Shown: positions 40,424-64,000 of the stretch, piece after piece
Position numbering within the stretch: position 1 is the first letter of the stretch
How the letters are laid out: each line of letters starts with the position of its first letter
Source: Mobula hypostoma
Taxonomy: Eukaryota
Assembly: GCF_963921235.1 (NCBI RefSeq)
Contig: NC_086124.1
Location: 27,652,001 to 27,716,000 of the forward strand
Reading direction: 5' to 3'
DNA: 64,000 nt
Notes under the pieces: generated by a model
What the model was told of the DNA's origin: nothing
The model's database searches: none
What the model saw: the letters and a program-made list of their open reading frames with translations, nothing else
Translations under genes and position numbers: made by a program

Positions 40424-40539
40424 TTAAAGCACACTGGTACCTGAGCTGGCACTGGAACTGGAGACGCCAGAGTCACTGGACCGCACGCTCGCACTGCACG
40501 TGTTCAACCGGCACAGCCCGGCCTGGTTATTGACCTTTG
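40424..40539 (-). CDS. WB: MHC W-category beta chain, cytoplasmic (probably terminal) exon: AKVNNQAGLCRLNTCSASVRSSDSGVSSSSASSGTSVL*
   Basis: Strong acceptor tctctctctctgtctctgcag; phase 1 matches the TM exon; Ser-rich tail; TAA at 40424-40426. A weak GTACCA donor at 40440 could extend the gene. Confidence 0.7.
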
Positions 40540-40779
40540 CTGCAGAGACAGAGAGAGAGAGAACGGACATCTTGTATTATGCAGTAATATTCAGCATACT
40601 ATCCACAAGCTCCAAACTTCAGTCAAAACTTTAAGACATACCTGATATAAGCAACTATGAGTACCCTCACTTAAGAGAGAATAAACTGTATCAACTTACA
40701 TTTCAGAAACTAATTTACTTTCCCTGTTTCAGCTCCCCCCCACCCCCATGTTCCCATTTTCCATTCATACGGCCATCAT

Positions 40780-41200
40780 ACATAGGAGCAGAATTAAGCC
40801 ATTTGGCCCATCGAATCTGCTCCACCATTCCATCATGGCTGATTCAATATCCCTCCCAACCCTTCTCCCCTAACTTTGTCACCCTTACTAATCAAGGACC
40901 TATCAACCCCTGCTTTAAATATACCCTCCACAGCCCTCTGTTAGAATGAGCTCCACAGATTCATTGCCCTCTGGCTAAAGAAATTCCTCCTCATCTCTGT
41001 CCTAAAGGGGTGACCTTCTGTTCTGAAGCTGTGCCCTCTGGTCTGGGACTCCCCTGCTGTAGGAAACATCCTCTCCACATCCACTCTATCTGGGCCTTTC
41101 AATGTTTGATAGGTTTCAATGAGATCTGACCCCCTCCATTCTTCTAATTTCCATTTAGTGCAGCCATAAACCACTCCTCATACATTAACCCTTTCATTCC
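40780..41200 (-). mobile_element. CR1 3' fragment
   Basis: DLIETYQTLKGPDRVDVERMFP..QTRGHSFR. Confidence 0.8.
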
Positions 41201-42009
41201 CAGCAATATTTACCCACCTCCCTATCACGTTCCAGCTTCTGCAGGTTTCTCCTACCTGCTCCTAGCTCCAACTGCCCATCAGACACTCCTCGTCTGGATC
41301 CACCCATCACCTCACAGCCTCTGTTACTGTTCTCTCTCTCCCCTCCACCATCCGCCCATTCTCCCTCCTTCCTTGAATCCACCCATCGCCCCACTTTTCT
41401 TCCACCTCTTTATACTGGTTATCTCCCATATAAAGAGTGCCAATGAAGTGTCTCGACTCTGAAGCATTGACTGCCCATTCCCCTCCCCCACCCACAGATG
41501 CTGTCTGACCCAGTGAGTTCCTCCAGCATCGAGCACTGTAACAGATTCCAGTGTCTCTGGTCTTTTAGAGTCTGAACTTTCTCACCTGTTGGTTGAATGT
41601 CTAGCCTTTTGACCCCTGTGTGAGAAACAGAGAGGTTACAATATCTGACATTAGCTCTGAAACAGTACAGGTCCTTTGGCCCATGATGTTTTATTCGAAT
41701 ATCACAGCAGAGTACAGGCCCCTCAGCCCACAATGTTCTGCTAACCTTTTAACCCATTCCATGATTGATCTAACCCTTCCCTCCCACAGAACCTGCATTT
41801 TTCTATCATTCATCTGCTTATCCGTATCTGTATCTGCCTCTACCATTATACTTTACTCTTTATTGTCGCCAAACAATTGATACTAGAACGTACAATCTTC
41901 ACAGCGATATTTGATTCTGCGCTTCCCGCTCCCTGGATTACAAATATTAAATATTAAAAATAAAAATTAGTAGATATTAAAAATTTAAATTATAAGTCAT
42001 AAATAGAAA

Positions 42010-42560
42010 ATAGAAAACTGGAAAGTAAGGTAGTGCAAAAAAACTGAGAGGCAGGTCCGGATATTTGGAGGGTACGGCCCAGATCCGGGTCAGGATCCAT
42101 TCAGCAGTCTTATCACAGTTGGAAAGAAGCTGTTCCCAAATCTGGCCGTACGAGTCTTCAACTCCCGAGCCTTCTCCCAGAGGGAAGAGGAACGAAAAGT
42201 GTGTTGGCTGGGTGGGTGGTGTCCTTGATTATCCCGGCAGCACTGCTCCAACAGCGTGCGGTGTAAAGTGAGTCCAAGGACGGAAGATTGGTTTGTGTGA
42301 TGTGCTGCGCCGTGTTCACGATCTTCTGCAGCTTCTTTCGGTCTTGGACAGGACAACTTCCATACCAGGTTGTGATGCACCCTAGAAGAAAGCTTTCTAC
42401 AGTGCATCTATAAAACTTAGTGAGGGTTTTAGGGGACAAGCCAAATTTCTTTAGTTTTCTCAGGAAGTAAAGGCACTGGTGGGCCTTCTTGGCAGTGAAC
42501 CCTGCTTGGTTGGACCAAGTTAAGTCATTTGTGATATTGACCCCGAGGAACTTAAGGATT
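42010..42560 (-). mobile_element. Rex1/Babar-like LINE 3' fragment
   Basis: KFLGVNITNDLTWSNQ..LYFLRKLKKFGLSPKTLTKFYRCTVES..QDRKKLQKIVNTAQ. Confidence 0.85.
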
Positions 42561-43139
42561 TTGACCTTACATGTACTGACCGCTCTTCTGTGTGTAAAAA
42601 CCTGCTTATACCATCCTCCAATCACCTTAAAATCACGCCCTCTCCTAATTAACCATTTCTGTCCTGGGAGAAAGTCTCTGGCTGTCCACTTGTGCCTCTT
42701 GCTCACCTCTGTCAGGTCACGTCTCATCCTCCCTCGCTCCAGAGAGAAAAGTCCCAGCTCGCTCAGCCTATCCCCGTGAGAAGTGCTCTGTAATCCCGTC
42801 AGCATCCTGGTAAATCTCCTCTACACCCTCTCTCTAAAGCTTCCACATCCTTCCTATAATGAGGTGACCAGAGCTGAACACAACACTCAACGTGTGATCT
42901 AACCAGGGTTTTATAGAGTTTACAGAAGCAACCATAGAATAGTTGGCATAACGTAATCCTATCTGCCTCTACGTGGCCCATATCCCTCCAGTCCCAGCTT
43001 GTTCATGCACCAAATACTATTTAAACACTATAGTGTCTGCTTCTACCACCTCCCCTCAAGGCACCCACAGCCCTGAGTGCAAAGAAAAAATATATTACAT
43101 GAGAACGTAGAAGAAGAACGAGGCCATTCAGCCCATCGA

Positions 43140-43550
43140 GTCGGCCTTTTCTCCTTGAAGCGACGGAGGATGGGAGCTGACCTGATAGAGGTGTATAAGA
43201 TGATGAGAGGCATTGATTGTGTGGGTAGCCAGAGGCTTTTTCCCAGGGCCGAAATGGCTAACACAAGGGGGCAGAGTTTTAAGGTGCTTGGAGGTAGGTA
43301 CAGAGGGGATGTCTGGGGTATATTTTCACACAGAGAGTGGTGGGTGTGTGGAATGCACTGCTGGTGGTGGTGGTGGAAGTGGATACAATATGGTCTTTTA
43401 AGAGCCTCTTAGATAGGTACATGGAGCTTAGAAAAATAGAGGGCTATGCGCTAGGAAATTCTAAGTGGTTTCTAGAGTAGGTTACATGGTCAGCACAACA
43501 TTGTGGGCCGAAGGGCCTGTAATGTGCTGTAGATTTCTATGTTCTATGAG
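43140..43550 (+). mobile_element. CR1 3' fragment
   Basis: GLFSLKRRRMGADLIEVYKMMRGID..NTRGQSFKV. Confidence 0.75.
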
Positions 43551-44349
43551 TCTGCGGTGACATTCCATCATGGCTGATTCATTACCCCTCTCAACCCCAT
43601 TCCCCTGCCTGATTTTTTACACCTCTACAATGTCAGCCCTCGGTCTCCTGCACTCCGAGTTGTAAGTCCCAGCCTGTCCGACCTCTCCCGGTAACACAGT
43701 CCCTCAAGTCCTGCCAACATTTTTGTAGATGTTTTATGCACTCGTTCCAATTAAATCACCTCTTTCCAATAGCAGGGTGCCCAAAACTGAGCATGATAAC
43801 TCCAGGGTTAAGATGGTGCTGGTGAATGTCAGCGACTTCTGGCCGGTGGCTGATGAGACAAGGGAAACAACTAAACACTTGCGTTAATCGCTCTTTTCCT
43901 GGTAAAAGCGATCATCACAAACAATAGGCCTGCAGCTTCCCTTTGGACTTGGAGGCAATTCAGCGTGGCAAAAGCGAGACAAGCTGAGGAGGGTCTATCG
44001 ATGTAAGCTCTGGGCCGAATGGGAAAGGTCGGGCACAGGCCAAATGGAGGCAGCGGGTTCCGGGCCCCAGACCGTATCGATGTGACCGAAGATGATATTT
44101 GGACGATGACTTAGGCGCTGAGCCAGACTGAAAAGATTTGCATGTCAGGGCCGGTTTGGTTCAATAGACAAACTCCTGGTGGGCTTCATAGAACACAGAG
44201 CAGAGAAAGCCTACAGCACAATACAGGCCCTTCAGCCCACAAAGCTCTGCTGAACATGTCCTTACCTTAGAAATTACCTAGGGTTACCCATAGCCCTCTA
44301 TTTCTCTGAGCGCCATGTACCTGTCCAGGAGTCTCTTAAAAAGCAGATG

Positions 44350-45540
44350 AGTTTAGAGTGTGCATCAGCACTTGGAGCTATGATGTTGTGGCCATTACAG
44401 AGACTTCGATGGTTCAGGGACAGGAATGGCTACTTCAAGTGCCAAGCTTTAGATGTTTCAGAAAGGATAGGGAGGGAGGCAAAAGAAGTAAGGGGCGTGA
44501 CATTGTTGATCACGGACAGTGTCACAGCTACAGAAAAGTAGGAAGTCATGGAGGGGTTGTCTACGGAGTCTCTGTGGGTGGAAGTTAGGAATAGGAAGGG
44601 GTCAATAACTCTACTGGGTGTTTTTTACAGGGACATCAAAGAGCAGATAGGGAGACAGATTCTGCAAAGGTGTAATAATAACAGGGTTGTTTTGGTAGGA
44701 GATTTTAATTTCCCCAATATTGATTGGCATCTCCCTAGAGTGAGGGGTTTAGATGGGGTGGAGTTTGTTAGGTGTGTTCAGGAAAGTTTCTTGACATACT
44801 ATGTAGATAAACCTGCAAGAAGAGAAGCTGTACTTGATCTGGTATTGGGAAATGAAACTGGTCAGGTGTCAGATCTCTCAGTGGGAGAGCATTTTGGAGA
44901 TAGTGATCACAATTCTATCTCCTTTACCATAGCATTGGCAATGGACAGGAACAGACAAGTTAGGAAAGTGTTTAATTGGAGTAAGGGGAAATATGAGGCT
45001 ATCAGGCAGGAATTTGGAAGCAAAAATTAGTAACAGATATTCTCAGGAGAAGAAATGTGGCAAATGTTCAGGGAATATTTGCGTGGAGTTCTGCATAGGT
45101 ACGTTCCAATGAGACAGGGAAAGGATAGTAGGGTACAGGAACTATGGTGTACAAAGGCTGTTATAAATCTAGTCAAGAAGAAGCTTACGAAACGTTTAAA
45201 AAACTAGGTAATGATAGAGATCTAGAAGATTATAAGGCTAGCAGGAAGGAGCTTAAGAATGAAAATAGGAGAGCCAGAAGGGGCCAGGAGAAGACCTTGG
45301 CAGAGAGGATTAAGGAAAACCCCAAGGCATTCTACAAGTATGTGAAGAGCAAGAGGATAAGACGTGAGAGAATAGGACCAATCAAGTGTGACAGTAGAAA
45401 TGTGTGTGTGGAACCAAGGAGATAGCAGAGGTACATAATGAATATGTTGCTTCAGTATTCAATATAGAAAAGGAACTTGGTGATTGTAGGAATGACTTAC
45501 AGTGGACTGAAAAGCTTGAGCATGTAGATATTAAGAAAGA
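44350..45540 (+). mobile_element. CR1 ORF2 endonuclease fragment
   Basis: YDVVAITET, LVGDFNFPNIDW, AVLDLVL, GDSDHNSI are APE-endonuclease motifs. Confidence 0.85.
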
Positions 45541-45639
45541 CGATGTGCTGTACAGTGGATGCAATAAAAGAATTACTTTTTAATCGGGGCGACGATCAAG
45601 ATTTTAAAGGCAGAGATTTGTGGCGGATTCTCTGAGTTG

Positions 45640-48600
45640 AGGAGTGACCAATCAGCAAGAGGGATTCATTAGAAAGGGCCAATAGGAATAATTGAAGTGC
45701 AAGTGGAGCGGCCATTGTTTGGAGTGTGCCAGTCTTTAGAGTGGCTAAGAGATCAGGCATGGGTGAGGTAAAATTGTCTTGTAAGTTACTCTCCCTCTGT
45801 TCTTGTTTGTTCATTCCTCATCTGTTAGTGCATAGTACAGTGAGAATGGCTCCAGGGGCAGTGGTCTGTGCTGTGTGTGGGATGTGGGAAGTCTGGGAGA
45901 CCTCCGGTCTCCTAGATACACACATCTGCACCAGGGAAAATGAGCTGCAGCTCCTGAGAGATCATGTTAAGGAACTGGAGCTGCAGCTCGATAACCTTCG
46001 ACTCATATGGGAGAACAAGGAGGTTGTAGACAGGAGCCACAGGGAGGTAGTCACCCCGAGACTGCATGAGACGGGTAACTGGGTGACTGTCAGGAGAAAG
46101 AAGGGAAATTCACAGCCAGTGCAGAGTACACCTGTGGCCATTCTCCGCAATAATAATATATAATTTTAGATACTGTTGAGGGGGATGACCTTACGGGGAA
46201 GCCACAGTGACTGGGTCTCTGGCTCGGAGTCTGGTGTTGTGGCTCAGTAGAGTAGAAAGGTGAAGAGGACGACAGTGGTGATAGGAGATTCCTTAGTCAG
46301 AGGAACAGAGACAAGGTTCTGTGGCCATGATAGACACCCAGATGGTACGTTGCCTTCCCGGTGCCAGGAATAACTCGGATCGGGTCCATGCCACTCTCAA
46401 GGGTGAGGGTGAGCAGCCTGAAGTCCTGGTACATATTGGCACCAATGACCCCGGTCCAGCAGGTGAGGAGGTCCTGAAGAGAGATTTTAGGGAGTTATAT
46501 AGAAAGCTAAAAAACATGACCTCTGGATTGCTGTCTGTGCCACGCACCAGTGGGGGATCAGCTACTCTGGATTGGTTGTTGTGCAATGAACTGGAATTGA
46601 TTAGAGAGCTTAAGGTAAAGGAACCCTGAGGGGAAAGTGATCTTAATATGACTGAACTCACCCTGAAATTTGAGAGGGAGAAGCTAGGATGACATAACCA
46701 TGGCTAACAAGGGCAGTCAGAGCCAACATAAAAGCCAAAGAGAGGGCATATAATGGAGCAAAACTTAGAGGTTTGGGAAGCATTTTAAAACCAACAGAAG
46801 GCAACTAAAAAATCATTAAGGTAAAGATAGAATACAACATTAAGCTAGCCAATAATATTAAAGAAGATACCAAAGTTTCTTCAGATACATAAAGTGTAAA
46901 AAAGAGGTGAGTAGATATTGGACTGCTGGAAAACAATGCTGGAGGGGTAGTAATGGGGGACGAAGAAATAACAGGTGAACTGAATAGGTATTTTCCCTCA
47001 GTCTTCACTGTGAAGACACTAGCAGAATGGTGTAAGTTCCTGGTGTCAGGGGTCATGAAGCAACGTGAAGTTACCATTACTAGAGAGAAGGTTCTTGGGA
47101 AACTGAAAGATCTGAAGATAGATAAGTCACCTGGACCAGATGGTGTACACCCCAGGGTTCTGAAAGAGGTAGTTGAAGAGATTGTGGAGGCATGAGTAAT
47201 GGTCTTTCAAGAATCACTAGATTCTAGAACGGTTCTGGAAGACTGAAAAATTGCAAATGTCTCTCCAGTCTTCAACGGGGAGAGAGCAGAAGAAAGAAAA
47301 TTGTCGGACAGTAAGCCTGACTCAATAGTTGGGAAACGTGGGAGTCGATTGTTAAGGACGTGGTTTCAGGGTAATTGGAGGCACATGATACAACAGGCCA
47401 TAGTCAGCATGGTTTCCTCAGGGGAAAATCTTGCCTGACAAATCTGTTGGAATTCTTTGAAGAAGTAACAAGCAGGATAGACAAAGGAGAATCTGTTGAT
47501 GTTGTGTACTTGGGTTTTCAGAAGGCCTTTGACAAGGTGCCACACGTGAGGCTGCTTGGTAAGCTACGAGCTCATGGTATTACAGGAAAGATTCTCGCAT
47601 GGATAAAGCAGTGGCTGATTGGCAGGAGGCAAAGACTGGGAATAAAGGGAGGCTTTTCTGGTTGGCTGCCGGTGACGACTGGTGTTCCACGGGGTCTGTG
47701 TTGGGACCGATTCTTCTTACATTATATATTAATGGTTTGGATGATGGATTTGATAGCTTTGTCGCAAAATTGCAGACGATTCACAGATAGGTGGAGTGGC
47801 AGATAGTTTTGCAGAAATAGAGAGGCTACAGAAGTACTTAGACAGATTAGGAGAATGGACAAAGAAGTGGCAGGTGGAATACAGTGTCGGGAAGTGTTTG
47901 GTCATATACTTTGGTAGGAGAAGTGAAAGGGTTGACTCTTTTCTAAACAGAGAGAAAATACAAAAATCTGAGGCACAAGGGGACTTGGGAGTCCTTGTGC
48001 AGGATTCTCTGAAGCTCAATTTGCAGGTTGAGTCTGTGGTGAGGAAGGCAACTGCAATATTAGAATTAATTTCAGGAGGACTAGAATATAAAAGCAAGGA
48101 TGTAATATTGAGACTTTATAAGACACTGGCAAGGCTTCACTTTCAGTATTGCGAGCAGCTTGGTACCCGTTATCTTAGAAAGGATGTGCTGAAATTGGAG
48201 AAGGTTCAAAGGGGGTTCACGAAAATGATTCCAGAAATAAACATCTTATCATATGGAGAGTGTGTGATGGTATTCGGCCTGTATTCACTGAAATTCAGCA
48301 TAATGAGGGGTGACATCATTGAAACTTATCAAATGGTGAAAGGCTTTGATAGAGTGGATGTGGAGAGAATGAGTCCTATGGTGGGAGAGTCTAAGAGCAG
48401 AGGGCATAACCTCAGAATAGAGGGGCATCCTTTTAGGACATTGATGAGGAGGAATTTCTTTAGCCAGTGGGTGGTGAATTGGTAAAATTTGTTGCCACAG
48501 GCAGCTGTGGAGGCCAAGTCTTTATGTATATTTAAGGCAAAGGTTGAAAGTTTCTTGATTGGTCAGGGCATGAAGGGATACGGGGAGAAGGCAGGAGATT

Positions 48601-48680
48601 GAGACTGAGAGGGAAAATGGATCAGCCATGAGGAAATGGCAGGGCAGACTCAACGGGTCAAATGGCCTAATTGTTTTAGT
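45640..48680 (+). mobile_element. Degenerate CR1 retaining ORF1 (zinc finger/zipper plus SGNH esterase) and RT, with most of the endonuclease deleted
   Basis: ORF1 VCAVCGMWE..ELQLLRDHVKELELQLD and CLPGAR..VLVHIGTND; ORF2 KSPGPDGVHPRVLKE, QHGFLRGKSCLTNLLEFFE, FQKAFDKVPH; many stops and frameshifts. Confidence 0.85.
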
Positions 48681-49169
48681 GGTTTTATGGCCAACGAATC
48701 GCAGAAGCGTTGCTGAATTCGAACTGTACCATCGGCTTCAGAGGACGATGGAGACAGGCATTTATCAATGGTCTATGCCCAAGTGAGTATGTAAGGTGAG
48801 TGAGTAAGTGTGTCCAAGGTGACAGGGAGAAAGTAGGAAAATGGGGTTGATGGGGGCATTAAATCAACCATGATGGGGTGATGGAGCAGGCTCGATGGGC
48901 TGAATGGCCTAAACCTGCTCCTTGGTCTTATTCTCACTGAGCAAAAACAGCCTCGTCCCTTCCTTCAGATTTTGGAACCCAACCTTGTTATTCTATTTTT
49001 TGTGCTACTTAGTTATTTTGGACATTTATAGTAATTTTTTTTATGTCTTTACCCCGACCTTCACGTCACAGAGGTCAGTGATGATAAATCTGATTCTGAG
49101 AATAGTGCAGAGACGGTTTCCCAGCTTAATCCACATTGATGAAGCTCTGTAAGCCTCTCAGCCACTTAC

Positions 49170-49283
49170 CCTTTGACGTGCAGCAGTACAAGATTCCAGT
49201 CACCACCATTGCGCACAGCCCGAGTATCCCCAGGACAGCTCCAACAATGATCAAAGCTTCATTCTCAACCAGTGCGTTGTGTT
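49170..49283 (-). CDS. WB: MHC W-category beta chain, connecting peptide/TM exon: EHNALVENEALIIVGAVLGILGLCAMVVTGILYCCTSK
   Basis: Acceptor ttttctcctcag, donor GTAAGT, 114 nt, phase 1-1; hydrophobic Gly-patterned helix resembling class II TM segments. Confidence 0.85.
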
Positions 49284-49629
49284 CTGAGGAGAAAACGTTG
49301 GAGGTTCTGTCGTTGTGTTAAGTCATGTTTCATATCATATCATTAAGTTCAAAGTTAGTTTATTATCAGAGTACATACGCATATGTCACCCTATGCAACC
49401 CTGAGGTTCATTTTCCTGTGGGCATACTCAGCAAATCTATGGAGTAGTAACTAGAACGGGATCAATGAACGATCACCTTGACTACAGAAGACAACAAACT
49501 GTGCCACTGTGCTGTGTAATAAATAAATAGCATCAAATAACCAGAAACTGAGATAAAGAGTCCTTAAAGAGAGATCATTGGTTGTAGGAGCATCTTAATG
49601 GATGGACAAGTGAGTGTAGTCAAGAGCCT

Positions 49630-50400
49630 CACACATCAAAGTTGCTGGTGAACGCAGCAGGCCAGGCAGCATCTCTAGGAAGAGGCGCAGTCGACGTTTC
49701 AGGCCGAGACCCTTCGTCAGGACTAACTGAAGGAAGAGTGAGTCGGGGATTTGAAAGCTGGAGGGGGAGGGGGAGATCCAAAATGATAGGAGAAGACAGG
49801 AGGGGGAGGGATAGAGCCGAGAGCTGGACAGGTGATAGGCAAAAGGGGATACGAGAGGATCATGGGACAGGAGGTCCGGGAAGAAAGACAAGGGGGAGGG
49901 GACCCAGAGGATGGGCAAGAGGTATATTCAGAGGGACAGAGGGAGAAAAAGGAGAGTGAGAGAAAGAATGTGTGCATAAAAATGAGTAACAGATGGGCTA
50001 CGAGGGGGAGGTGGGGCCTTAGTGGAAGTTAGAGAAGTCGATGTTCATGCCATCAGGTTGGAGGCTACCCAGACGGAATATAAGGTGTTGTTCCTCCAAC
50101 CTGAGTGTGGCTTCATCTTTACAGTAGAGGAGGCCGTGGATGGACATGTCAGAATGGGAATGGGATGTGGAATTAAAATGTGTGGCCACTGGGAGATCCT
50201 GCTTTCTCTGGCGGACAGAGCGTAGATGTTCAGCAAAGCAGTCTCCCAGTCTGCGTCGGGTCTCGCCAATATATAAAAGGCCACATCGGGAGCACCGGAC
50301 ACAGTATATCACCCCAGTCGACTCACAGGTGAAGTGTTGCCTCACCTGGAAGGACTGTTTGGGGCCCTGAATGATGGTAAGGGAGGAAGTGTAAGGGCAT
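49630..50400 (-). mobile_element. Penelope-like element 3' part with GIY-YIG endonuclease
   Basis: GVIYCVRCSRCGLLYIGETRRRLGDCFAEHLRSV (ORF 50019-50345). Confidence 0.9.
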
Positions 50401-51120
50401 GTGTAGCACTTGTTCCGCTTACACGGATAAGTGCCAGGAAGGAGATCAGTGGGGAGGGATGGGGGGGACGAATGGACAAGGGAGTTGTGTAGGGAGCGAT
50501 CTCTGCGGAATGCAGAGAGAGGTGGGGGAGGGAAAGATGTGCTTAGTGGTAGGATCCCGTAGTCAAGAGCCTGATGGTTGAGGGGTGGTAACTGATTCTG
50601 AACCTGGTGGTGTGAGTCCCGAGGCTCCTGTACCTTCTACCTGATGGCAGCAGCGAGAGAAGTGCATGGCCTGGTTGGTGGGGATCTCTGACAAAGGACG
50701 CTGCGTTCCTACAATGTTGTTTCATGTAGATGTGCTCAATGGCCGGGAGGGCTTCACCTGTGACGTACTGGCCCAAATCTACTACCTTTTGTAGGATTTT
50801 CCATTCAAAAGGCATTGGTGTTTCCATACCAGGTGGTAATGCAGCCAGACAATGCACGTCTAGAAAAGTTTGTCAAAGTTTCAGTGTCAGGTCAAATCTC
50901 CAGTGATTTCTAAGGAAGTAGGGACAAGTCTACTTCCTCAAGAGGTGACTTGTTGTGAGCAGCTCCCATGGGAATCATCAAATATTCCCATTGTTCAGGA
51001 CCACAACTGCTGAAATCCATGGTCACGGCCATGGGTACTTCAGTAAATAACACATTTCACAACGTATCCCAATGATATTGAGTGGAAGTGGCACATTGCT
51101 CATGTGGTTCCATTATTTAA

Positions 51121-52535: not shown

Positions 52536-53413
52536 TATTAAACCTGATTCTGTTTTGTCAAGGCATGTTCAATGTACGAGGAGCATTTGATGGGTCTGGG
52601 CCTGTACTCACTGGAGTTTAGAAGAATGAAGAAGGATCCTATAAAATATTGAAAGTCCTACACTGGACATGGAGAGGATGTTTCCTATATAAGGGGAGTC
52701 CAGGACCAGAGAGCACAGTCTTAGAATAGAAAGATGTCCATTTAAAACAGAGACGAGAAGGAATTTCTTTAGCTAGAGGGTGGTGAATCTGTGGAATTTG
52801 TTGAGTTCTGTTCATTTGGGCTACGTAATTATTTAGTACGCACGTGCACTCTCCCAGTTACGTGCGTGCACGCGGGAGGAGGAAGAGGAACTGTGGGATG
52901 TAAAGGTGACGGCCCTCGGGTATTGAACGGGGACATTCAAAGTAAAGTTGTTTAAACAAAAGGGAAATGTGTCTTTGTTGTTTGGGCGTTATCAGTGGTA
53001 GTGGAGGACGGTTACGATCTATCGACCTCTGGGCTATGGGCCCTGCGCACTACTGAGTATGTTTGAAGCAGAGATCGATAGGTTCTTGATTAGAAAGAAC
53101 ATCAAAGGTTACGGGGAGAAGTCGGGAGACTGGGGTTGACAGAGACAGTAAATCTGTCACAATGGAATCCCAGAGTAGACTTGATGAGTCAAATGGCCCA
53201 ATTCTGCTCTTAGCGTTATGGTTTTATGGTATCTAAGCTGTCTGACTTGATTCTCACAATTGACAGCAGAGAGGATGAGAGAGATCTTGAGCAGTTGGGA
53301 CTTGCTTCTGGACAGAAACGGGCCACGATGGATTCTGTGTCAAGTTGACATCAGTGAGAATACGGTGGTGTTGACGGGGTCAGGCATCATTTCTCCAACT
53401 TGCCCGTTCTTAC

Positions 53414-53684
53414 CTAGAGGTATCACGAGCTTCCCACTGACGGCCTCGTGTTCCATCTGACAGACGTACCCCTGGCTGTCTCCATCCAGGGGACGGACAC
53501 TCCTAACTTGAAAGGCTCCATTGCTTTGAGGGACAACGTTGGTCGTGTCTGATCCATTGTCAGCAACTTCCCCGTTTCTGACCCAGTGCACTTTAATGTC
53601 CCGGGGGAAGAAGTTCTTGGCCGTGCACACCAGATACATTTCGCCTCGTTTCTTCTTGTGTGAAGGCTCTGGTATGGGTAGGAG
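53414..53684 (-). CDS. WB: MHC W-category beta chain, beta2 Ig-C1 exon (frame problem at the 5' end)
   Basis: YLVCTAKNFFPRDIKVHWVRNG..VVPQSNGAFQVRS..YVCQMEH has C1-set Cys/Trp/Cys; P and G occupy the class I alpha3 P235/G239 positions; donor GTAAGA. Length 271 nt from the strongest acceptor is not divisible by 3; an alternative acceptor at 53668 gives 255 nt in frame. Confidence 0.85.
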
Positions 53685-53754
53685 CTGTGAAGGAATTAAA
53701 GAACAGAGTATGGGTTCAAAGTAGCTTTGCTCTCTTGTGACTGACAGTATGGAT

Positions 53755-54830
53755 AGAACTTCACTCTGTGTCTGACCCCGCGGGTGTGTGATAGGACAGT
53801 GTGCACGGAGTTTCATTCTGTGTCTGACCCCGGCAGTGTGCGATGGGACAGTGTAGATGGAGTTTCACTCGGTGTCTGACCCCAGGAGTGTGTGATGGGA
53901 CGTTGTCGAGGGAGCTTCACTCTGATTCTGACCCCAGGAGTGTGTGATGGGACGGTGTGGAGGGAGCTTCACTCTGTGTCTGACCCTGGGAGTGTGTGAT
54001 GGGACGTTGTCGAGGGAGTTTCACTCTGATTCTGACCCCAGGAGTGTGTGATGGGACGGTGTGGAGGGAGTTTCACTCTGTGTCTGACCCCGGGAGTGTG
54101 TGATGGGACGGTGTGGAGGGAGTTTCACTCTGTGTCTGACCCCAGGAGTGTGTGATGGGATGGTGTGGAGGAAGCTTCACTCTGTGCCTGACCCCGGGAG
54201 TGTGTGATGGGACGTTTTGGAGGGAGCTTCACTGTGTCTGACCTCGGGAGTGTGTGATAGGACAGTGTGGAGGGAGATTCACTCTGTGTCTGACCCCGGG
54301 AGTGTGCGATGGGACAGTGTGGAGGGAGTTTCACTCTGTGTCTGACCCCGAGAGTGTGTGATGGGACAGTGTGGAGGGAGCTTCACTCTGTGTCTGACCC
54401 CGGGAGTGTGTGATGGGACAGTGTGGAGGGAGCTTCACTCTGTGTCTGACCCCAGGAGTGTGTGATGGGATGGTGTGGAGAGAGTTTCACTCTGTGTCTG
54501 ACCCCGGGAGTGTGTGATGGGACGTTTTGGAGGGAGCTTCACTCTGTGTCTGACCCCGGGAGTGTGTGATGGGACAGTGTTGAGGGAGATTCACTCTGTG
54601 TCTGACCCCAGGAGTGTGTGATGGGACGGTGTGGAGGGAGCTTCACTCCGGCAGTGTGTGATGGGACGGTGTGGAGGGAGTTTCACTCTGTGTCTGACCT
54701 CAGGAGTGTGTGATGGGATGGTGTGGAGGGAGCTTCACTCTGTGTCTGACCCCGGGAGTGTGTGATGGGACGGTGTGGAGGGAGCTTCACTGCATGTTTG
54801 ACCCCGGGACTCTGTCTCTGACCCTGAAGC
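53755..54830. repeat. 52-bp minisatellite, about 21 copies, in WB intron 2
   Basis: Unit GGGAGTGTGTGATGGGAC(G/A)GTGTGGAGGGAG(C/T)TTCACTCTGTGTCTGACCCC; 52-nt period confirmed (53891 vs 53943). Confidence 0.95.
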
Positions 54831-55014
54831 GTGTTTGATGAGAGTTGTCTCTGTGGCGGTAGAGGTGGCCATGGACTAACATGTCAAAATTGGAATGGGG
54901 ATTGGAATTAAAATGGTTGGTCACCGGGAAATCGTTCTTGTTGCAGATGGAGCGAAGGCGCCCCGCCTCACTTCCCATCCCTCTCCCTATCCGAGTTAAC
55001 AGAAAGGTCCTGAC

Positions 55015-55284
55015 CTTTCCTTTCCCATGTGGCATTGGTCGAGATGGCCAGGCGCTTGATCCTGTCACAGAGGCTCGTGATCCGTTCTGGGACGGACTCC
55101 ACAAAAAGGCTGTTGGCATTTCGCTCATCCACCACTCTTTGGGCAAAGCGACGGGTGGTCACAAACGTCTTGTTGTCTGGGTCGTAGTAAACGATGGTCT
55201 CGCCGTCGTAGCCATCCACCCAGGTCACAACGGTCTTGTGATCATGTTGAGCGCACTGACAGTACTGGTGAAGGATGTGTACAC
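55015..55284 (-). CDS. WB: MHC W-category beta chain, beta1 (class I alpha2-like) exon
   Basis: GVHILHQYCQC..DGYDGETIVYYDPDNKTF..AQRVVDERN..SLCDRIK..WERK; 270 nt, phase 1-1; the Cys pair is 62 residues apart, similar to class I C101-C164. Confidence 0.88.
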
Positions 55285-55319
55285 CTAGAACCAAACCAAA
55301 CAGAACAGACAAGAATTGA

Positions 55320-56700
55320 TGTGGCGAAGATGTTCCTGCATTGGAGAAGGTCTAGGGGAGGTTCACAAGAATGATCCTGGGAATGAAAGGGCTAACGTAT
55401 GAGGAACTGGGAATACAAATCCATAATTCCTTGAAAGTGGAGGCACAGGTAGGTAGGGTCATAAAGAGAGCTTTTATCACATTAGCCTTCATAAAGTATT
55501 GAGCACAGGAGTTGGGATGTTATGTTGACATTGTATAAAACATTGGTCAGGCCAAATTTGGAGCATTGTGCGCAATTCTGGTCACCTACCTATAGGAAAG
55601 GTATCAATAACTTTGAAAAGGTGCAGAGAAGAATTACAGAGATGTTGCCAGGATTTGAGTTATAGGGAAAGGTTATAGGCAGGAGACTGGAGAGAGTTTT
55701 AATAGAGTTACACAAAATTATGAGGGGTACAGATAGGATGAATGTAAGCAGGTTTTTTTTCACACTGAGGTTGGGTGAGACTAGAGCCAGAGGTCATAGG
55801 TTAAGAATGAAAGGTGAAATATTTAAGGGGAACATCAGGGGGAGCTTCTTCACTCAGAGGGTGGTGCTAATGTGAAATGGGCTTGGAGTTAGGATCCAGG
55901 TGCAGGTCACTGGAACTAGGTTGAATAGTAGTTTGGCACAGAATAGATGGGTCAAAGGGTCTATTTATGTGCTACAGTGAATCTAGGGGCATTTGATGGC
56001 TTTGGGCACGTGCTCACTGGAGTTTCGAAGAATATGGAGGGGATCTCGTTGAAAGCTATTGAATATTGAATTAGATAGAATGGATGTGGAGAGGATGTTT
56101 ACAACAGTGGGAGATCCTAGGACCAGAGGGCACAGCCTCAAAATAGAAGGACAGAGACGAGGAGGAAGTTCTTTATCCAGAGGGTGGTATATCTGTGGAA
56201 CTCACTGCTACAGCCCGCAGCGGAGGCCAAGTCATTGGGTACATTTAAAGTGGAGGTTGATAGGTCCATGATCAGAGGTTATGGGGAGAAGGCAGGAAGA
56301 TGGGGTTGAGATAATTAATAAATCAGCTATGATCGAATGGGAGATCAGATGGGACAAATGGCCTAGCTCTTCTCCTGTATCTTCTGGTTTCCATCAGTAG
56401 GAGAGTCTTGCACCGGCGGGGAGATCCTCAGAGTCAAGGGGCAATGAGGAATTTACAACTGAGACGATGAGGAATTTCTTCAGGCAGGGTGTGGTAAATC
56501 TGTGGAATTCGTGGCCAAGGGGGACCGTGGAGGCCAAGTCATTGGGTGCATTCAAGGCAGGGACTGACGGGTTCTTGATGGGTCGTGTGGGTTGAGAGTC
56601 ACGGAGAGAAGAGTGGAGGATGGGGTTGATAAAAGGAATCAGCACTGATCGAACGGTGGAGCTCATCTGGTCTGATTCTGCCCTCTTATCATATGGTTAA
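55320..56700 (+). mobile_element. Several nested or tandem CR1 3' fragments in WB intron 1
   Basis: Repeated RTRGHSL/CR1-tail remnants. Confidence 0.7.
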
Positions 56701-57009
56701 CTTGCTGTCCTGTCTCCCTCGCTCATGGGGTCTGACAGCACATGTGCTTAGTTACGTTTCAAGTAATATGGGGGGAGGGCAAAGCACCCCCGCAGCGAAG
56801 GTGAGATAAAAAGAAATAAAAGCCTCTCGGCAAGAGACCAAAACTCTCGCAATTGGATTAGTCTGGAGTCAGTGTGAGGTCATTCATGTCGGAATTTGGA
56901 AGAACCGGGGGCTTCATAAATACGCGAAGTTGGAAATGGTGGACAATTAAATGATTTCAGAGAGTCAGCCATTCCTGTTTGGTCAGAACGGAGGAAGGGA
57001 CGTCATCCT

Positions 57010-57640
57010 GTAAAATACCCCTCCCACAACGTGGCGCTCCCTCGCCATCGCCCCTCCCACAACGTGGCGCTCCGTCGCCATCGCCCCCCCACACCAAGGT
57101 GCTTCCTCGCCATCGCCCCCCCCACACCATGGTGCTTCCTCACCATCGCCCCCCCACAACGTGGCGCTCCCTCACCATCGCCCCTCCCACAACGTGGCGC
57201 TCCCTCGGCATCGCCCCTCCCACACCAAGGTGCTTCCTCACCATCGCCCCCCCCACAACATGGCGCTCCCTCGCCATCGCCCCTCCCACACCATGGTACT
57301 TCCTCGCCATCGCTCCCCCCCCACACCATGGTGCTTCCTCACAATCGCCCCTCCCACAACGTGGCGCTCCCTCGCCATCGCCCTCCCACACCATGGTACT
57401 TCCTCGCCATCGCCCCCCCACACCATGGTACTTCCTCGCCATCGCCCCCCAACACCATGGTGCTTCCTCACCATCGCCCCTCCCACAGTGCGGTTCTCCC
57501 TCGTCGTTGCTCCTCCCACAAGCACCTGTGCTCCTTTCTCATTACCCTCCCCCAGAATACAGCTCCCTCCCATTGTGTGGCGCTCCCTCCTCACCGCCCC
57601 GCCTAGTGCGTGGCGCTCCCTCCTCACCGCCCCTCCTATA
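57010..57640. repeat. About 33-bp CpG-rich minisatellite with two interleaved unit types
   Basis: Units ccctcgccatcgcccctcccacaacgtggcgct and tcctcgccatcgccccccccacaccatggtgct. Confidence 0.9.
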
Positions 57641-57897
57641 GTGAGGTACTCCCTACGCACTCCTGTACCACCCAGCCGTGCAATCACTGTTTAGTCCCGA
57701 GCTCTGACGGGTTCTCCTCGGAGATTTAGTGCACGGACCCTCAGGACCTCCCGGCGTGGAAGCAGAGCTCCCTCTGTCCATTTTCTGTGTTGACCACCGA
57801 CCCAACGCAAACGCAATCGCAATCGCCTCCATCCTCCCTGCAGCCGACCACGTCTAGACCGCAGGCCCTCAAGTCCACACGTTGAGAGGCAACTTAC

Positions 57898-57982
57898 CAC
57901 TCTGGGTGGCCCCCACCACATCCAGGACGGACACCACTGCCCCGAGGAAGGCCAGGAAGGAGGGCCTGCACAGAGCTCTCAT
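57898..57982 (-). CDS. WB: MHC W-category beta chain, leader exon: MRALCRPSFLAFLGAVVSVLDVVGATQS
   Basis: ATG, hydrophobic signal peptide, 85 nt (phase 1), donor GTAAGT; splices in frame to the beta1 exon. Confidence 0.82.
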
Positions 57983-59268
57983 CCTTCAGGAGATAAGTCT
58001 GAACTGAGCAGTGCAGGCGAGACCGGAGCGATCCACCTGAATCCACCCTCTGGGGCGTTCGGGAGGACGGTCCGTCTACTTGTGATGGAGGGGGCGGGTT
58101 TCAGAACCCGAATCAGAATCAGGTTTATTATCGCCGGCCTGTGCGGTGAAATGTGTTAACTTTGCGGCAGCAGTACAATGCAATACATGACAAAAATAGA
58201 AAAAAAACTGAATTACAGTAAGTTTATATATGTATATTAAATAGTTAAATCAAAATAAGTGTGACAAAGGCAGAAATGTAAAAAAGTAGTGAGGTAGCGT
58301 TCAATGCCCATTCGGAAATCTGTTGGCGGAGGGGAGGAAGCTGTTCCTGAATCGCTGAGTGTGTGCCTTCGGGCTCCTGACGGTAGCAATGTGAAGAGGG
58401 CAGGTCCTGGGTGGTGGATGCCGCCCGCCTGAGGCGCTGCTCCTTGCAGATGTCCGGGATGCCGGGGAGGCTGGGACCCATGATGGAGTTGGCTAATTTC
58501 ACCACCCTCTGCAGCCTGCTTCGATCCCGCGCGGAAGACCCCCACCCCACCAAACCAGACGGAGTGCTCTCCACTGTACGTCTGCAGAAGTACAGATGGA
58601 AGAGGTGCTCCAGTCCAGCGGGGGCTGGTTTGAGGACTCCCGGGTGACTCGGGAGTTGACGAAGGACTGCGGTACGAGCGGTGCGAAAAAGCGAAAAATA
58701 AAATCCAGTCAGCGGCCGTCCTCTGGACGAAAACGCCACGTTAGTGAGAGAGGTCGGAGGAGAATGGCCAGGCTGTTTTAAACTGACAGGAAGGTGACGC
58801 TAACTCGAATAACCACACATTACAACAGTGGCGGGCAGGACAGCATCTCTGAACACAGAAAGCACATTGAAGCTTGAAGTGGACGGGCTACGGCAGCAGC
58901 AGACCACACCGGGTGCCACTCCTGTACCTGATAAAGTGGCCACTGTGACAATAAACCTGATTCTGGTTCAGGACTTGAATCATGCCCCCGTCACGCCGAG
59001 GACACCCAGATTGAAAGTTTCCCCTCGGCGTTCTGTCGAGCTTCCCATTTCCCGTCGAACTGGTTTCTCCCGCCGAACCTGATGCTGCCAGGTACCCGTC
59101 ACCGAGGCCCAATGAGCGCAGATGGTGAACTCCCTCCGGGATGACGGGGCGGGCTTTTGTTGCAGTCCGCAACCTCCAAAGACGAAGCGGCACTCGTCTC
59201 CACGACGCCCCCCTCTCCCCCGTTCCCAAATTTCAGTGCTTCCAGAAAGAGAGGAGTTATCCACCGAA
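57983..59268. promoter_or_regulatory. Head-to-head intergenic region, candidate shared promoter
   Basis: GC boxes at 58091-58098 and 59146-59153, IRF-E-like AAAAGCGAAA at 58687-58696, CCAAT at 59109-59113, TGACG at 59142-59146; CpG-rich; interrupted by Rex1 (about 58105-58590) and Tc1 (about 58740-58945) fragments. Confidence 0.5.
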
Positions 59269-59329
59269 ATGGGGCTCGTCAGCTTCTTAATGGCTCTGTT
59301 ATCTCTTACAGCAACAGGAGCGGAGATTG
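59269..59329 (+). CDS. WA: MHC W-category alpha chain, leader exon: MGLVSFLMALLSLTATGAEI
   Basis: ATG, signal-peptide-like sequence, 61 nt (phase 1), donor GTAAGC. Confidence 0.8.
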
Positions 59330-59559
59330 GTAAGCACTTTGTCCGGGAGTGTTGGTGGGGCGGTGGCCCTTGTGACCTCTTGGCGTTGTGGGTGGGGATT
59401 TGGTCATAAGAGGTTAAGATACGGGAGGATAATCCAGCCATTCGACTCCATCATTCGGATATAGATACACACATCTGTAACCCCCGGGGAAAGGTTTCAC
59501 TGCCAACGTCATGTCCTTTCTGTTGAAGCAGTGTTTGGGTTACGTTGAGAGATAACGGG

Positions 59560-61026
59560 TGCTTTGGAATGCAGACATCCCACCTCTCCCGGAATTTCCG
59601 GGAGTCTCCCGTAAATTAATAGTGGCTCCCTGATGCCTGCAAATTATGTACAATATCACGGACATCAATTTTTTTTTAAGAGCGAGCGAGAGAGAACGAG
59701 AGAGCAAGCAAGCGAGAGCGCGCGCGCGCGAGAGCGCGCCATGGCAGAATGTTCCAAAGAAAGGAAATATAAAACGTACGTCACGCTAGACTACACTAAA
59801 GTGTACCCCTGCCTAATAGGGGTCAAAAATAATGACAGTGTTGCTCGCTGCGCTGTTTGCAACAGTGACTTTTCTATTGCCCATGGTGGGTTAAGACTGT
59901 AAAAGACGTGTTGAGGTGAGTTTAACAGGTGTCATTCGTTCATTAGCGTAGCTAACCTTATTTAAACTAGCTGGCCAGCTACTAAGGAGCTACTCTATTG
60001 CAGACATCCCACCTCCCCTGGAAGTTCTGGGAGTCTCCCGCAAATTGATGGTGCTACCTCCCTGAAATGAGTTTTTGCAGGGTGGGATGTCTGGGAATGT
60101 GAGCTGGGTCTTTTGGGTGGGAGAGGAAGATCGGAGATGCTGCAGAGAACCGGTCGTAGGATACGACCTGGTGGGGAGATCGTGAGCAGGGCGACAAGAC
60201 CGACTGAGCATTGGTAAATTGTGCTCTAACTCGGGTCCCCAACCTATTTTGCACTGCGGACCGGTCGACCGGAGGGGGGGGCGGGTGTTCAAGTGGGGTT
60301 AAACTCACCTCAACATGTCTTTCACAGTTAGGGTTGCCAACTTTCTCACTCCCAAATAAGGGACAAAAGTAGCAGTCAAATCCTGACGAAGGGTCCCGGC
60401 CCGAACGTCGACTGTACCTCTTCCTATAGATGCTGTCTGCCCTGCTGAATTCCACCAGCATTTTGTGTGTGTTGACGGGACACTTGTGTTTACCCCGAGA
60501 AAGACCACCATGACCATGAAGCCTTGCGCGGGCACCTGTGTGCGCATGTGTGATATGGCCGATTTTTTTTTCCACAGATCGGTTTTGACTTACATTATTT
60601 CTACTTTATATAGGCTGTGTATTTATCATATCATTCCTGCTTTTACTATATGTTAGTGTTATTTATTTTTGGTTTTATGTGTTATTTGGTATGATTTGGT
60701 AGGTTATTTTTTGGGTCTGGGAATGCTCAAAAATTTTTCCCATATAAATTAATAGTAATTGCTTCTTCGCTTTACGCCATTTCGGCACGAAAGGTTTCAT
60801 AGGAACGCTCTACCTTAGTGGGGGAAATATGAGACAAGGGCGGTCCTGTATGGGAGAAACCAATTTAGCCCAATATACGGGATATCCCGGCAAATACGGG
60901 ACAGCTGGCAACCCTATGTTCAAGTTTAACGGTGCGTGACGGAATGAGGAAAGGTGCAGCTGACTCATATCTTTCCCTCGCAGCCCGGTAGCACATGCTT
61001 TGTGGCCCGGTGGTTGGGGACCACTG
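59560..61026. mobile_element. Nested hAT-type remnants and MITEs in WA intron 1
   Basis: BED-finger-like fragment ARCAVCNSDFSIAHGG; TIR pair TAGGGTTGCCA (60329)/TGGCAACCCTA (60916) nested inside GGTCCCCAACC/GGTTGGGGACC termini; a Penelope tail sits within. Confidence 0.6.
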
Positions 61027-61439
61027 CACTGGTGCACTTAATTATAATGGGCCCTTTCTGATTTTTTTTTTACTAACGCTTTAGTTAAGATTCATAAATA
61101 TAATTCCTTTAATTGTATGCAGTGTGCTGTCTGTTGCTTTGTGGGACGGAGTTGTAACAGGGTTGCAAATTACACAGCATCCACACAAACCGGGGTTTGG
61201 GTAGGTCACGGGTTTGGTGGGACCGGAGTGTACATTCCCGAGACTTACGTAACCAAGAAAACCAGCGAGGTTTTGTTATTTATTTACTTACCCATTGATT
61301 TAGATACAGCGTAGAACAGACCCAGCAACCCCCAATTTAACCCTTGCCTAATCTGTGCGTAGCATTGCGCATAACGCTTCACAGCACCAGCAAACCGGTT
61401 TCAATCACCGACAAGTGCCTGCAAGGACATAATAGGAAC

Positions 61440-62000
61440 AGAAGTAGGTCATCAGACCCGTCAAGCCTTCTCCGCCATTCAATAAGATCATGGCTGATCT
61501 GGCCATGGATTCATCTGCACCCACCTGATTTTTCCCCAGAACCCTTAATTACCCTACTGTGCAAAAATTTATCCAACCTTGTCTTAAATATATTTACTGA
61601 GGTAGCCTCCACTGCTTCATTGGGCAGAGAATTCCATAGATTCACCATCCTCTGGGAAAAGCAGTTTCTCCTCATCTCTGCCCTAAATCTGCTCCCCCAA
61701 ATCTTGAGGCTATGTCCCCTAGTTCTAGTCTTTCCTGCCTCTACCTTACCTATCCCTTTCATAACCTTATATCTTCTTTCATTCTTCTGAATTCTAGCGA
61801 GTCCAGTCCCAGGTGACTCAATCTCTCCTCATAGTCTAACCCCGTCATCTCTGGAATCATCCTGGTGAACCTCCTCTGCACCGCCTCCAAAGCCAGTCTA
61901 TCCTTCCTCAAGTATGGAGACCAGAACTGCACGCAGTACTCCAGGTGTGGCCTCGCCAGTACCCTGTACAGTTGCAGCATAACCTCCCTGCTCTTAAATT
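61440..62000 (-). mobile_element. CR1 3' fragment
   Basis: LYRVLARPHLEYCVQFWSPYLRKD; RTRGHSLKI. Confidence 0.85.
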
Positions 62001-62067
62001 CAAAGAAGTGTGTATGTTCTCCCCGTGACCGTGTGGGTTTTCTCCGAAACATTCCTAAAACATACTA

Positions 62068-62810
62068 GGCTGATTTATATTTGTGCGTACCAGCTTACGC
62101 CGTAGCCTACGCAAATGGGCTGCGCCGTTGTGAGCATTTATACTTGTGTGTTGGTGTGTCTGTGTCGCTCTGCAATTCACCGCCAAAACGCCTATTGGCG
62201 GTGGGGTTTCTATGCCACTGTGTTGAGTTTCTTCGTGTTGAAACTCAACACGAAGAAATTCAAACTTCAAACAATGGCGACCGAAACTGAAGGAGGGTGA
62301 ATTTTCTGTGCTTGTCTGGCCACTGAGAGACATGGACGAGGAAATGCATTTCAAATATTTTCGGATGTCGGCAGGTAGATTTGACGATTTGGTTCATCGT
62401 CTCCAACCATTTATTTTGCATCAGTGTACGCACAGTATACTCAGAGACTGGCAATCACCATTCCAGTTTTAGCTTCAGGTGAAAGTCAACAGGCTGTAGC
62501 AGCTAGCTACAAACTGGCGTCAAGCACAGGGTCCTCCATAATTTCGGAGATCTGTAAAGCTTTATGGAAAGCATTACAGCCAGAGTTCCTTCCCTGCCCT
62601 TTAGTCGCCTAATGGGAAGTTATTGCAACGTAGGAGGAAATGCGATGCTACCAAGTGGACCAATCACAGTTGTTGAGGTTTGAGTCACCGCGACGCTTCG
62701 TTACATTTTGGGAGAGGTGCGCGTTAGGCTACAGCGTAGGGTTCGGCGTAGAGTATAGCATAGGTACGTCGCTACGTCGTACCTACGGTGTACATTTGAT
62801 GCACAAGTAT
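62068..62810 (+). mobile_element. Non-autonomous PIF/Harbinger element (paralog of 7261-7989)
   Basis: Starts GGCTGATTTATATTTGTGCG; same transposase fragments; right TIR truncated. Confidence 0.8.
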
Positions 62811-63059
62811 CTCAAGGTTTATACTTGTTGGGGCTTAGTGAGTTGTGGGCACACTATGTTGGCGATACTGGTGGGCTGCCCCCTGACTATCCTCGGACCG
62901 TGTTGATCATTGACGCGTTTCACCATATGTTTGGACGTTATGTGATGAATTGAACTAATCTTTAATTTGTTATGCTTGATCTGTACTGCTGCCACAAAAT
63001 AAACACGTCTCACGATGTATCATTTGTGGCCGCACTGGGAGGTTAGGTTGCAAACGTTA

Positions 63060-63363
63060 TGTCACCAGACGCGGTGACATCATCAGTGCACAACTGAGTG
63101 CTGTTTCTGCGGCGTGTTCGCTTTGCACTGGGTCCCGGCCAGTCGGATAGCTGAGATCCCCGGTTACCGATGGTTGTGAGCGCAGGTTCCTCGGGTGTCT
63201 ATGGCTCGGCCCCTCGGCCGCGATCCCGCAAACGTTCAATATGGTTGTTAATAGAGTCTTCGACTGGTGGCGAGACATTTGTGACCAACCCTCCAGGCTC
63301 GGCGCCAACAATCAGCCAACCCGAGCCACCAATCTTCTTTCAATTTCCTTAATACCCGTGACA
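63060..63363. mobile_element. Candidate solo LTR
   Basis: Inverted termini TGTCAC...GTGACA about 300 bp apart; no clear TSD. Confidence 0.3.
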
Positions 63364-63825
63364 ACAAACCTGAATCTGGTTCTGAAACTTGTCCCTCCAG
63401 GAGGGGGTGATGTCTCCAGCCTGGTTTGCGTGTGACTGCGAACCCCCCAAAAACGAGGGGTTCAAAATTCCGATTCGGATTAATTTATTAATAAATGTAT
63501 ATGCATATTTAACACGGGTACTGTATATCGAAATGCGTTAACAGGCGACGCACCCTGAGGGTGTGCTGGGGGCAGCCTGCGGGTGTCGCCGTACATTGCG
63601 ACGCCAACATCGCGTGCCCACGATGTTCAGCAGGTCTGGAGAAGATGGAGGCCTTCTTTGGACTTGCAGGTACCAGGCCACCAACTTCCCTAATGGAGAC
63701 ACAGATCCAAGGCTTCCGGCGTGGGAGGGGGGTCTCGACTTCTGGACTTCAACGTGATGGGCCAGAGGGCCTGACAACGCTGTGATGTTCTTTCCCAAGT
63801 AACATTCTGGGTGTTCTGTCTGCAG

Positions 63826-64000
63826 AGTTCGGGCCCATGGCTGAGCACCTGTTCTACAGCCGGGATTCCTCGGACTCGGAGACGACGCTGGATGTCCTCA
63901 GCGTCAATTCCGTTCCCTTTCTCGCCTACCATTACGAGGCGCAGACCTTCGTTATCAACGGGCGGGAGACGGACGGGAGAGCCGAGTTGGGTGAGGCAGA
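63826..64000 (+). CDS. WA: MHC W-category alpha chain, alpha1 exon (partial, runs off the window): EFGPMAEHLFYSRDSSDSETTLDVLSVNSVPFLAYHYEAQTFVINGRETDGRAELGEA
   Basis: Acceptor gttctgtctgcag, phase 1 matches the leader, open to the window end; VNSVPFLAY aligns with the MHC alpha1 VDD..F..(F/Y) strands. Confidence 0.7.

Follow-up and report, generated by a model that had tools for sequence, protein, structure and literature searches.

Which branch of the major histocompatibility complex (MHC) family is represented by two divergent genes in the genome of the ray Mobula hypostoma, and can both of them still encode a complete chain? The genes occupy 37.4–64 kb of a 64,000-nt stretch of contig NC_086124.1, which was analysed as a whole and is referred to below as the window. 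A minus-strand gene, WB, and a plus-strand gene, WA, point away from each other, and their start codons lie 1,287 bases apart. This is in agreement with the first-pass annotation of this DNA, made from the letters alone, which had placed a plus-strand gene with a leader and an alpha1-like exon 1.29 kb away from the minus-strand gene. It is almost certain that the two genes are a W-category MHC pair of a myliobatiform ray, transcribed in divergent directions. Judged by sequence, the plus-strand gene is WA_DS5-like and the minus-strand gene is of the WB_Nds5L type. Taken together, the observations are very probably best explained by a W-category pair in which the beta2 exon of WB carries a one-base insertion.

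The W-category was described in 2021 as a third MHC group, characterized by class I-type interface residues and a beta2-microglobulin-like alpha2 domain (Okamura et al. 2021, PMC8713811). The WA and WB genes are paired and are arranged head to head in sharks, teleosts, and coelacanth; the supplement of the same study names three shark pairs, one of which, WA_DS5L/WB_Nds5L, is reported to be head-to-head (PMC8713811). Batoids were covered in 2021 by little-skate sequences only, some of which were partial or pieced together (PMC8713811). The kind of locus, the subgroup, the pairing, and the head-to-head orientation had all been published by then. What is new here is a fully mapped WB_Nds5L-type gene, together with the start of its WA partner, from a ray.

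The WB gene consists of six exons separated by five introns, all of which are GT-AG, and its exon phases are 1-1, as is usual for this superfamily (Table 1). Exons 1–5 were located by tblastn with the two proteins closest to the gene in the database, P0002 of Hypanus sabinus (272 aa) and P0001 of Mobula birostris; the exon boundaries were set from splice motifs, and exon 6 was found by a motif scan. In the gene models of the relatives, the leader is joined directly to a single distal domain. No alpha1 exon was detected in the WB gene: when the 64 kb were searched by tblastn with 210 proteins of the MHC family, among them whole class I heavy chains, matches were confined to the WB exons and to stretches derived from long interspersed nuclear elements (LINEs). 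The exon map thus bears out the architecture read in the first-pass annotation, namely a leader, one distal domain, an immunoglobulin (Ig) C1 domain, a transmembrane segment, and a tail, with no alpha1 exon. It departs from that reading at the 3' end. The lower end given there, 40424, is a stop reached by reading through the donor of exon 5; the conserved last exon lies 3 kb past it and encodes the ..DGLTKSST tail that closes every full-length relative. Counting exon 6 extends the gene from 17.5 kb to about 20.5 kb. In paralogues and skates, a mini-exon encoding some ten residues lies between the transmembrane exon and the AK.NNQ tail exon; no such exon was found in 40540–49169 by tblastn or by motif scan, and exon 4 joined straight to exon 5 keeps the frame.

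The residues of the encoded chain place WB in the family domain by domain. In a row-by-row comparison with great white, bullhead, and catshark WB_Nds5L, the beta1, beta2, and transmembrane parts agree motif for motif with the WB_Nds5L rows of Datasets S1–S3 of Okamura et al. 2021. Beta1 (..HILHQYCQCAQHDHK..WVDGYDGETIVYYDPDNK) fits the rows of Dataset S1; it has two cysteines 64 residues apart, a YDG motif, and a NAT glycosylation site, and it is not matched by the Pfam model MHC_II_beta. Beta2 fits the Nds5L rows of Dataset S2, with an APT..RAF start and a four-residue gap, and the transmembrane segment fits Dataset S3. The Ig domain has P57 and G61 and does not have the W61 of class II, as is apparent when VVPQSNGAFQ of the window is set beside LLSDGDWTYQ of a class II beta chain (P0085) and ILPNEDGTFQ of class I. 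The first-pass annotation had already described an Ig domain with class I-type P and G residues and without the class II Trp, and VVPQSNGAF is indeed what is seen there. Its class I alpha2-like distal domain stands only in part. The class I-type interface set is A32, G35, and D37 (and Q6); WB beta1 keeps G35, along with the YDG motif, and has G at 32, T rather than D at 37, and H rather than Q at 6. The residues at these positions are identical in the published WB_Nds5L rows.

A careful maximum-likelihood tree of beta1+beta2, with 55 rows that included added elasmobranch, coelacanth, and gar class II beta chains, leads to the same placement. The window gene and Hypanus P0002 are sisters (support 100/98) inside a 16-row elasmobranch clade (100/100), which is itself nested in a WB clade of 22 rows that also takes in sequences of lungfish and teleosts (99/97). 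Class II beta (12 rows, 100/97) and class I (18 rows, 97/94) form separate clades. Since the cluster of the lungfish row holds BBO93987.1, deposited as 'class II beta chain, WB_01 precursor', the WB clade is anchored to the published family. Three further rows, from shark and ray, correspond to the published WB_DS1-like row and form a separate clade without a firm placement. The WA/WB assignment made in the first-pass annotation is therefore supported by the match to Datasets S1–S3, by the tree, and by the skate pairs discussed below. The check proposed with it, a tree against shark WA/WB, class I, and class II, leaves the gene outside both class II beta and class I. None of the findings named there as fatal to the proposal was made, as far as they could be looked for inside the window.

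It is extremely improbable that the WB gene belongs instead to class II beta, as a divergent non-classical member, or to class I, as a gene whose alpha1 exon has been lost, even though several observations could be read in that way. The relatives of WB carry automatic names of all these kinds: ZAG-like, FcRn-like, class I-like, and class II beta-like. The AlphaFold model of beta1+beta2 of the Hypanus orthologue (predicted local distance difference test score, pLDDT, 89.4) has four strands, a long helix, and an Ig domain, and it resembles class I alpha2-alpha3 no more and no less closely than class II beta chains, so that the fold does not separate the two. Single-sequence and profile searches of beta1 against PDB chains find weak matches only, the best of them to ULBP6/RAET1L (E 0.002–0.003), class I alpha2 (0.04–0.2), and class II beta (0.13–1). 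These matches lean weakly, and not decisively, to class I-family alpha2 domains. In the profile search with beta2, multi-domain immunoglobulin heavy chains crowded out other matches, and class I was not told apart from class II. When 1.84 billion representatives were scanned with HMMER, using the Hypanus orthologue as query, 1,045 relatives were found; the best listed matches that span complete beta1+beta2 are mostly class I-type chains aligned over alpha2-alpha3, which agrees with the class I flavour of WB. What speaks against a class I or class II gene is that each of these forms a well-supported clade without the window gene, which groups with deposited WB sequences. Moreover, the invariant class II W61 is missing, and the gene is paired with a WA_DS5-like gene, as published.

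The evidence for pairing comes from the start of WA in the window and from the corresponding loci of skates. The partial alpha1 of WA matches the little skate WA_DS5-like sequence (Dataset S1 row 'little skate DS5 like') at about 22/35 aligned positions, and its exon is 63–66% identical to the skate genomic WA_DS5-like alpha1 exon. In both skate loci (L001 and L002), the WA_DS5-like gene lies on the opposite strand upstream of WB, and the two start codons are separated by 2.1 kb (L001) or 7.3 kb (L002). In both, the skate WA leader, MGLRGLL.ALLSLAAAVAEIG, has the same position as the WA leader of the window. The WA alpha2 exon in L001 carries LQFLVNG and ERDWTF; the WA alpha2 Ig domain is expected to be beta2-microglobulin-like, with W61, F/L37, L55, F/Y57, and Y8 (PMC8713811). 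In the ray, the interval between the two start codons is presumed to be a shared (bidirectional) promoter region.

Table 1. Exons and repeats of the WA/WB locus, with positions counted from the first base of the window.
Feature	Position	Strand	Content	Basis or remark
WB exon 6	37432..37460	-	C-terminal ..DGLTKSST and stop	motif scan, tttcag acceptor
WB exon 5	40441..40539	-	cytoplasmic tail (AKVNNQAGLCRLNTC.., Ser-rich)	tblastn with P0001, splice sites
WB exon 4	49170..49283	-	connecting peptide and transmembrane segment (..ALIIVGAVLGILGL..TGILY..)	90% identity, P0002 residues 209-248
WB exon 3	53414..53684	-	beta2 Ig-C1, 271 nt, one base in excess	Pfam C1-set, E 6e-15
52-bp-unit minisatellite	53759..54809		WB intron 2	Tandem Repeats Finder
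WB exon 2	55015..55284	-	beta1 membrane-distal domain, 270 nt, phase 1-1	87% identity, P0002 residues 29-119
33-bp minisatellite	57018..57654		WB intron 1	Tandem Repeats Finder
WB exon 1	57898..57982	-	ATG and signal peptide (MRALCRPSFLAFLG...), phase-1 donor GTAAGT	tblastn, P0002 residues 1-29, 79% identity
Interval between both start codons	57983..59268			partly taken up by a repeat-like open reading frame
WA exon 1	59269..59329	+	ATG and 20-codon signal peptide (MGLVSFLMALLSLTATGAEI), phase-1 donor GTAAGC	
WA exon 2	63826..64000	+	first 58 codons of alpha1 (..LDVLSVNSVPFLAYHYE..), cut by the window end	acceptor ctgcag

The second part of the question, whether both chains can still be made, turns on exon 3 of WB. 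The exon contains an extra base, which sits in CAAG at 53658–53655, and a length of 271 nt is incompatible with phase-1 boundaries on both sides. If splicing takes place at the acceptor common to all relatives (cacag/CT, giving APTHTRAF..), a TAA is reached in frame at 53595–53593, codon 149; the Ig domain itself is open, in a different frame (KKKRGEMYLVC..). The WB reading frame is therefore not continuous through all exons when the canonical acceptor is used. The Ig domain described in the first-pass annotation can be read in an open frame only from a non-canonical acceptor, and its exon does not fit phases 1-1. Messages with a stop far upstream of the last exon junction go to nonsense-mediated decay, and the same would be expected of a WB message that stops at codon 149.

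Logan contigs of four public runs were compared over 53300–53757. The extra base is present in DNA contigs of organism A, at all depth in run X1 and at about 38/62 in X2, which argues that the insertion is real DNA and not an assembly slip. Other copies in the DNA of organism A are without one base at 53656/53657. Two spliced RNA contigs also lack the extra base and, without it, read APTHTRA.TQKKRGQMYLVC.. in one frame. One of them, X16 (2,290 nt), is 93% identical over exon 3, which is preceded by ..RSSNITLENM, with the junction at 53685, and followed by EHNAL..; these junctions indicate that it derives from the paralogue represented by Mobula hypostoma P0004. The other, X32 of organism B, is 95.5% identical, has the window-type diagnostic residues, and is joined to exon 4. 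The insertion is thus specific to this copy or lineage.

Two further observations were made on the same runs. A window-type WB gene is expressed with an open frame in a relative (organism B; runs X8/X30-X32). At 53698, 53699, 53707, and 53426 every X1/X2 DNA contig differs from the window, so that these runs are not simply the assembled haplotype.

It is reasonably likely, on balance, that this WB copy is a pseudogene or a null allele. An error of assembly or sequencing in an otherwise intact WB gene is very unlikely: the extra base lies within a short A/G-rich run (ACACAAGAAGAAA), and close copies could confuse an assembly, but the base recurs in DNA contigs of this organism that were built independently from public runs, where it accounts for the full depth in one run and for the larger share of it in another. 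A functional WB gene that makes use of an alternative acceptor (exon start 53668) is less improbable than such an error, although still unlikely. It would encode a chain of 283 residues whose first beta2 strand has lost about five of them (..WERK EPSHKKKRGEMYLVC..). The alternative acceptor (ataccag/AG) is preceded by a run rich in pyrimidines and yields an in-phase exon of 255 nt, the remainder of the WB gene is open with intact splice sites, and the 12 differences between exon 3 and the organism B transcript (5 protein-changing, 7 silent) are as expected under constraint. However, the canonical AG is still there upstream and is the one used by the paralogue transcript and by every annotated relative, all of which start beta2 with AP(T/I)... 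The alternative form would also drop most of strand A, and it has no supporting transcript.

Several points weigh against a W-category pair with a disabled WB copy, and they concern both the assignment and the loss of the frame. The class I-type D37 and Q6 are replaced in WB beta1, as they are in all published Nds5L sequences, and the WA gene continues past the window end, so that its defining alpha2 residues lie outside the window. An RNA contig of this exact WB copy was not found among the contigs of the public runs. An AG that restores the frame is available 16 bases downstream of the canonical acceptor, and since all other exons and splice sites are intact, the gene may have been only recently or only partly disabled. 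Finally, the DNA contig with the extra base differs from the window at 7/227 positions and may represent another haplotype or another copy.

Two types of WB_Nds5L-like gene occur in myliobatiform rays, as is seen when 53414–55284 is compared with P0003, P0004, and P0006. In beta1 the window gene is 88% identical to Hypanus P0002 and 38–40% identical to the second type (P0003, P0004, P0006). Within one lineage, by contrast, set against Mobula hypostoma P0004, it is 92% identical in beta2 and 82% in the connecting peptide and transmembrane segment. This mosaic of beta1 and Ig-transmembrane parts suggests either exon-limited homogenisation or fast divergence of the ligand-facing domain, and it hints at selection on the ligand-facing surface. 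A comparable difference between domains has been noted for two catshark Nds5L copies, which are 36% identical in beta1 and 66% in beta2 (PMC8713811). There is also the quite improbable scenario that the WB gene next to WA_DS5-like has been knocked out, that WA is intact, and that WA pairs with the paralogous WB (Ig 92%, transmembrane 82%, outer domain 38%). If this were true, the exons that form the dimer would stay similar among W-category copies, through gene conversion for instance, and diversification would affect the ligand-facing domain; chains would then be paired combinatorially in a non-classical MHC group.

By homology, the WA and WB products are predicted to pair on the cell surface as an alpha/beta heterodimer of class II style, in which the contacts between platform and Ig domains would follow the class I pattern. 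The heterodimer would be a non-classical, low-polymorphism surface MHC molecule that possibly binds a ligand. That WA and WB depend on each other for glycan maturation and surface expression has been shown only for tiger salamander chains, and the W-category subgroups are described as being without full sets of peptide-anchoring residues and without the high polymorphism of classical MHC (PMC8713811). In the present WB copy, a message spliced at the acceptor of the relatives would stop at codon 149 and be degraded, or only the leader and beta1 would be made. The role as a surface molecule is probably lost for this copy.

The introns of WB are rich in repeats. Intron 1 contains LINE tail fragments in addition to its minisatellite, and introns 3 and 4 contain LINE reverse transcriptase and endonuclease open reading frames. 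The first-pass annotation had assigned a minisatellite to intron 1, which is right for the 33-bp repeat; the 52-bp one belongs to intron 2. The last ~25 residues of Hypanus sabinus P0002 (245–272) align in antisense with a LINE copy that lies in WB intron 4 (46389–46480, minus strand), and the public P0002 model probably ends in a repeat-derived exon, not in the conserved tail exons. Elsewhere in the window, 10200–27200 holds many arrays coding for a proline-rich unit (..VSPQTNPTVPLSPHSPVS..) that give spurious weak tblastn matches to the Ig domain; the region looks like a large minisatellite or repeat field. A guess that 62280–62600 is the remnant of a Harbinger-type transposase found no support in Pfam and was dropped.

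No protein from this gene is present in a collection of 5.8 billion proteins, and its relatives go under the automatic names listed above, so that the description of the locus as unannotated or mislabelled was fair. It illustrates how public annotation scatters the family under class I, class II, ZAG, and FcRn names. The overall picture of the W-category is unchanged by the locus; well-mapped loci are useful for work on the function of this group.

Among known systems, the locus resembles the shark WA_DS5-like/WB_Nds5L pair (great white shark contig QUOW01001706, PMC8713811) in its subgroups, its head-to-head layout, and its class II-type exon order. Shark WB_Nds5L and the window gene have in common the beta1 signature H.xH..C.C..D..K....W.DGYDG.TI.YYD, the beta2 start APT..RAF with the four-residue gap, and the transmembrane segment ALIIVGAVLGILG..TGILY. 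In contrast to the shark pair, the ray introns are swollen with LINEs and minisatellites and the beta2 exon is frameshifted, and the ray beta1 is only about 50% identical to that of great white shark WB_Nds5L. The nearest annotated relative is Hypanus sabinus P0002, annotated as 'zinc-alpha-2-glycoprotein-like', with 88% identity in beta1, 89% in beta2, and 92% in the connecting peptide and transmembrane segment; unlike the window gene, its frame is open through beta2, and the tail of its model is the one that matches the LINE antisense strand. The skate pairs of Leucoraja erinacea (P0179 in L001) and Amblyraja radiata (P0005 in L002) consist of a divergent WA_DS5-like gene and a WB gene, as in the window, with similar leaders. 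Their WB genes are 55–58% identical to that of the ray in beta1 and beta2, and both are annotated as intact proteins.

The classical groups each share a part of these features. Classical class II beta chains (elasmobranch, coelacanth, gar; HLA-DR/DQ beta) have the same chain architecture and fold, with template-modelling scores (TM-scores) of 0.65–0.76, but they carry W at Ig position 61 and no P57, they form their own clade, and the MHC_II_beta model that describes them misses the beta1 of the window. Class I alpha2-alpha3 shares the P57/G61-type Ig residues, the YDG motif, and the disulphide of the distal domain, whereas class I genes contain an alpha1 exon in the same gene, their products pair with beta2-microglobulin, and they too fall in a clade separate from that of WB.

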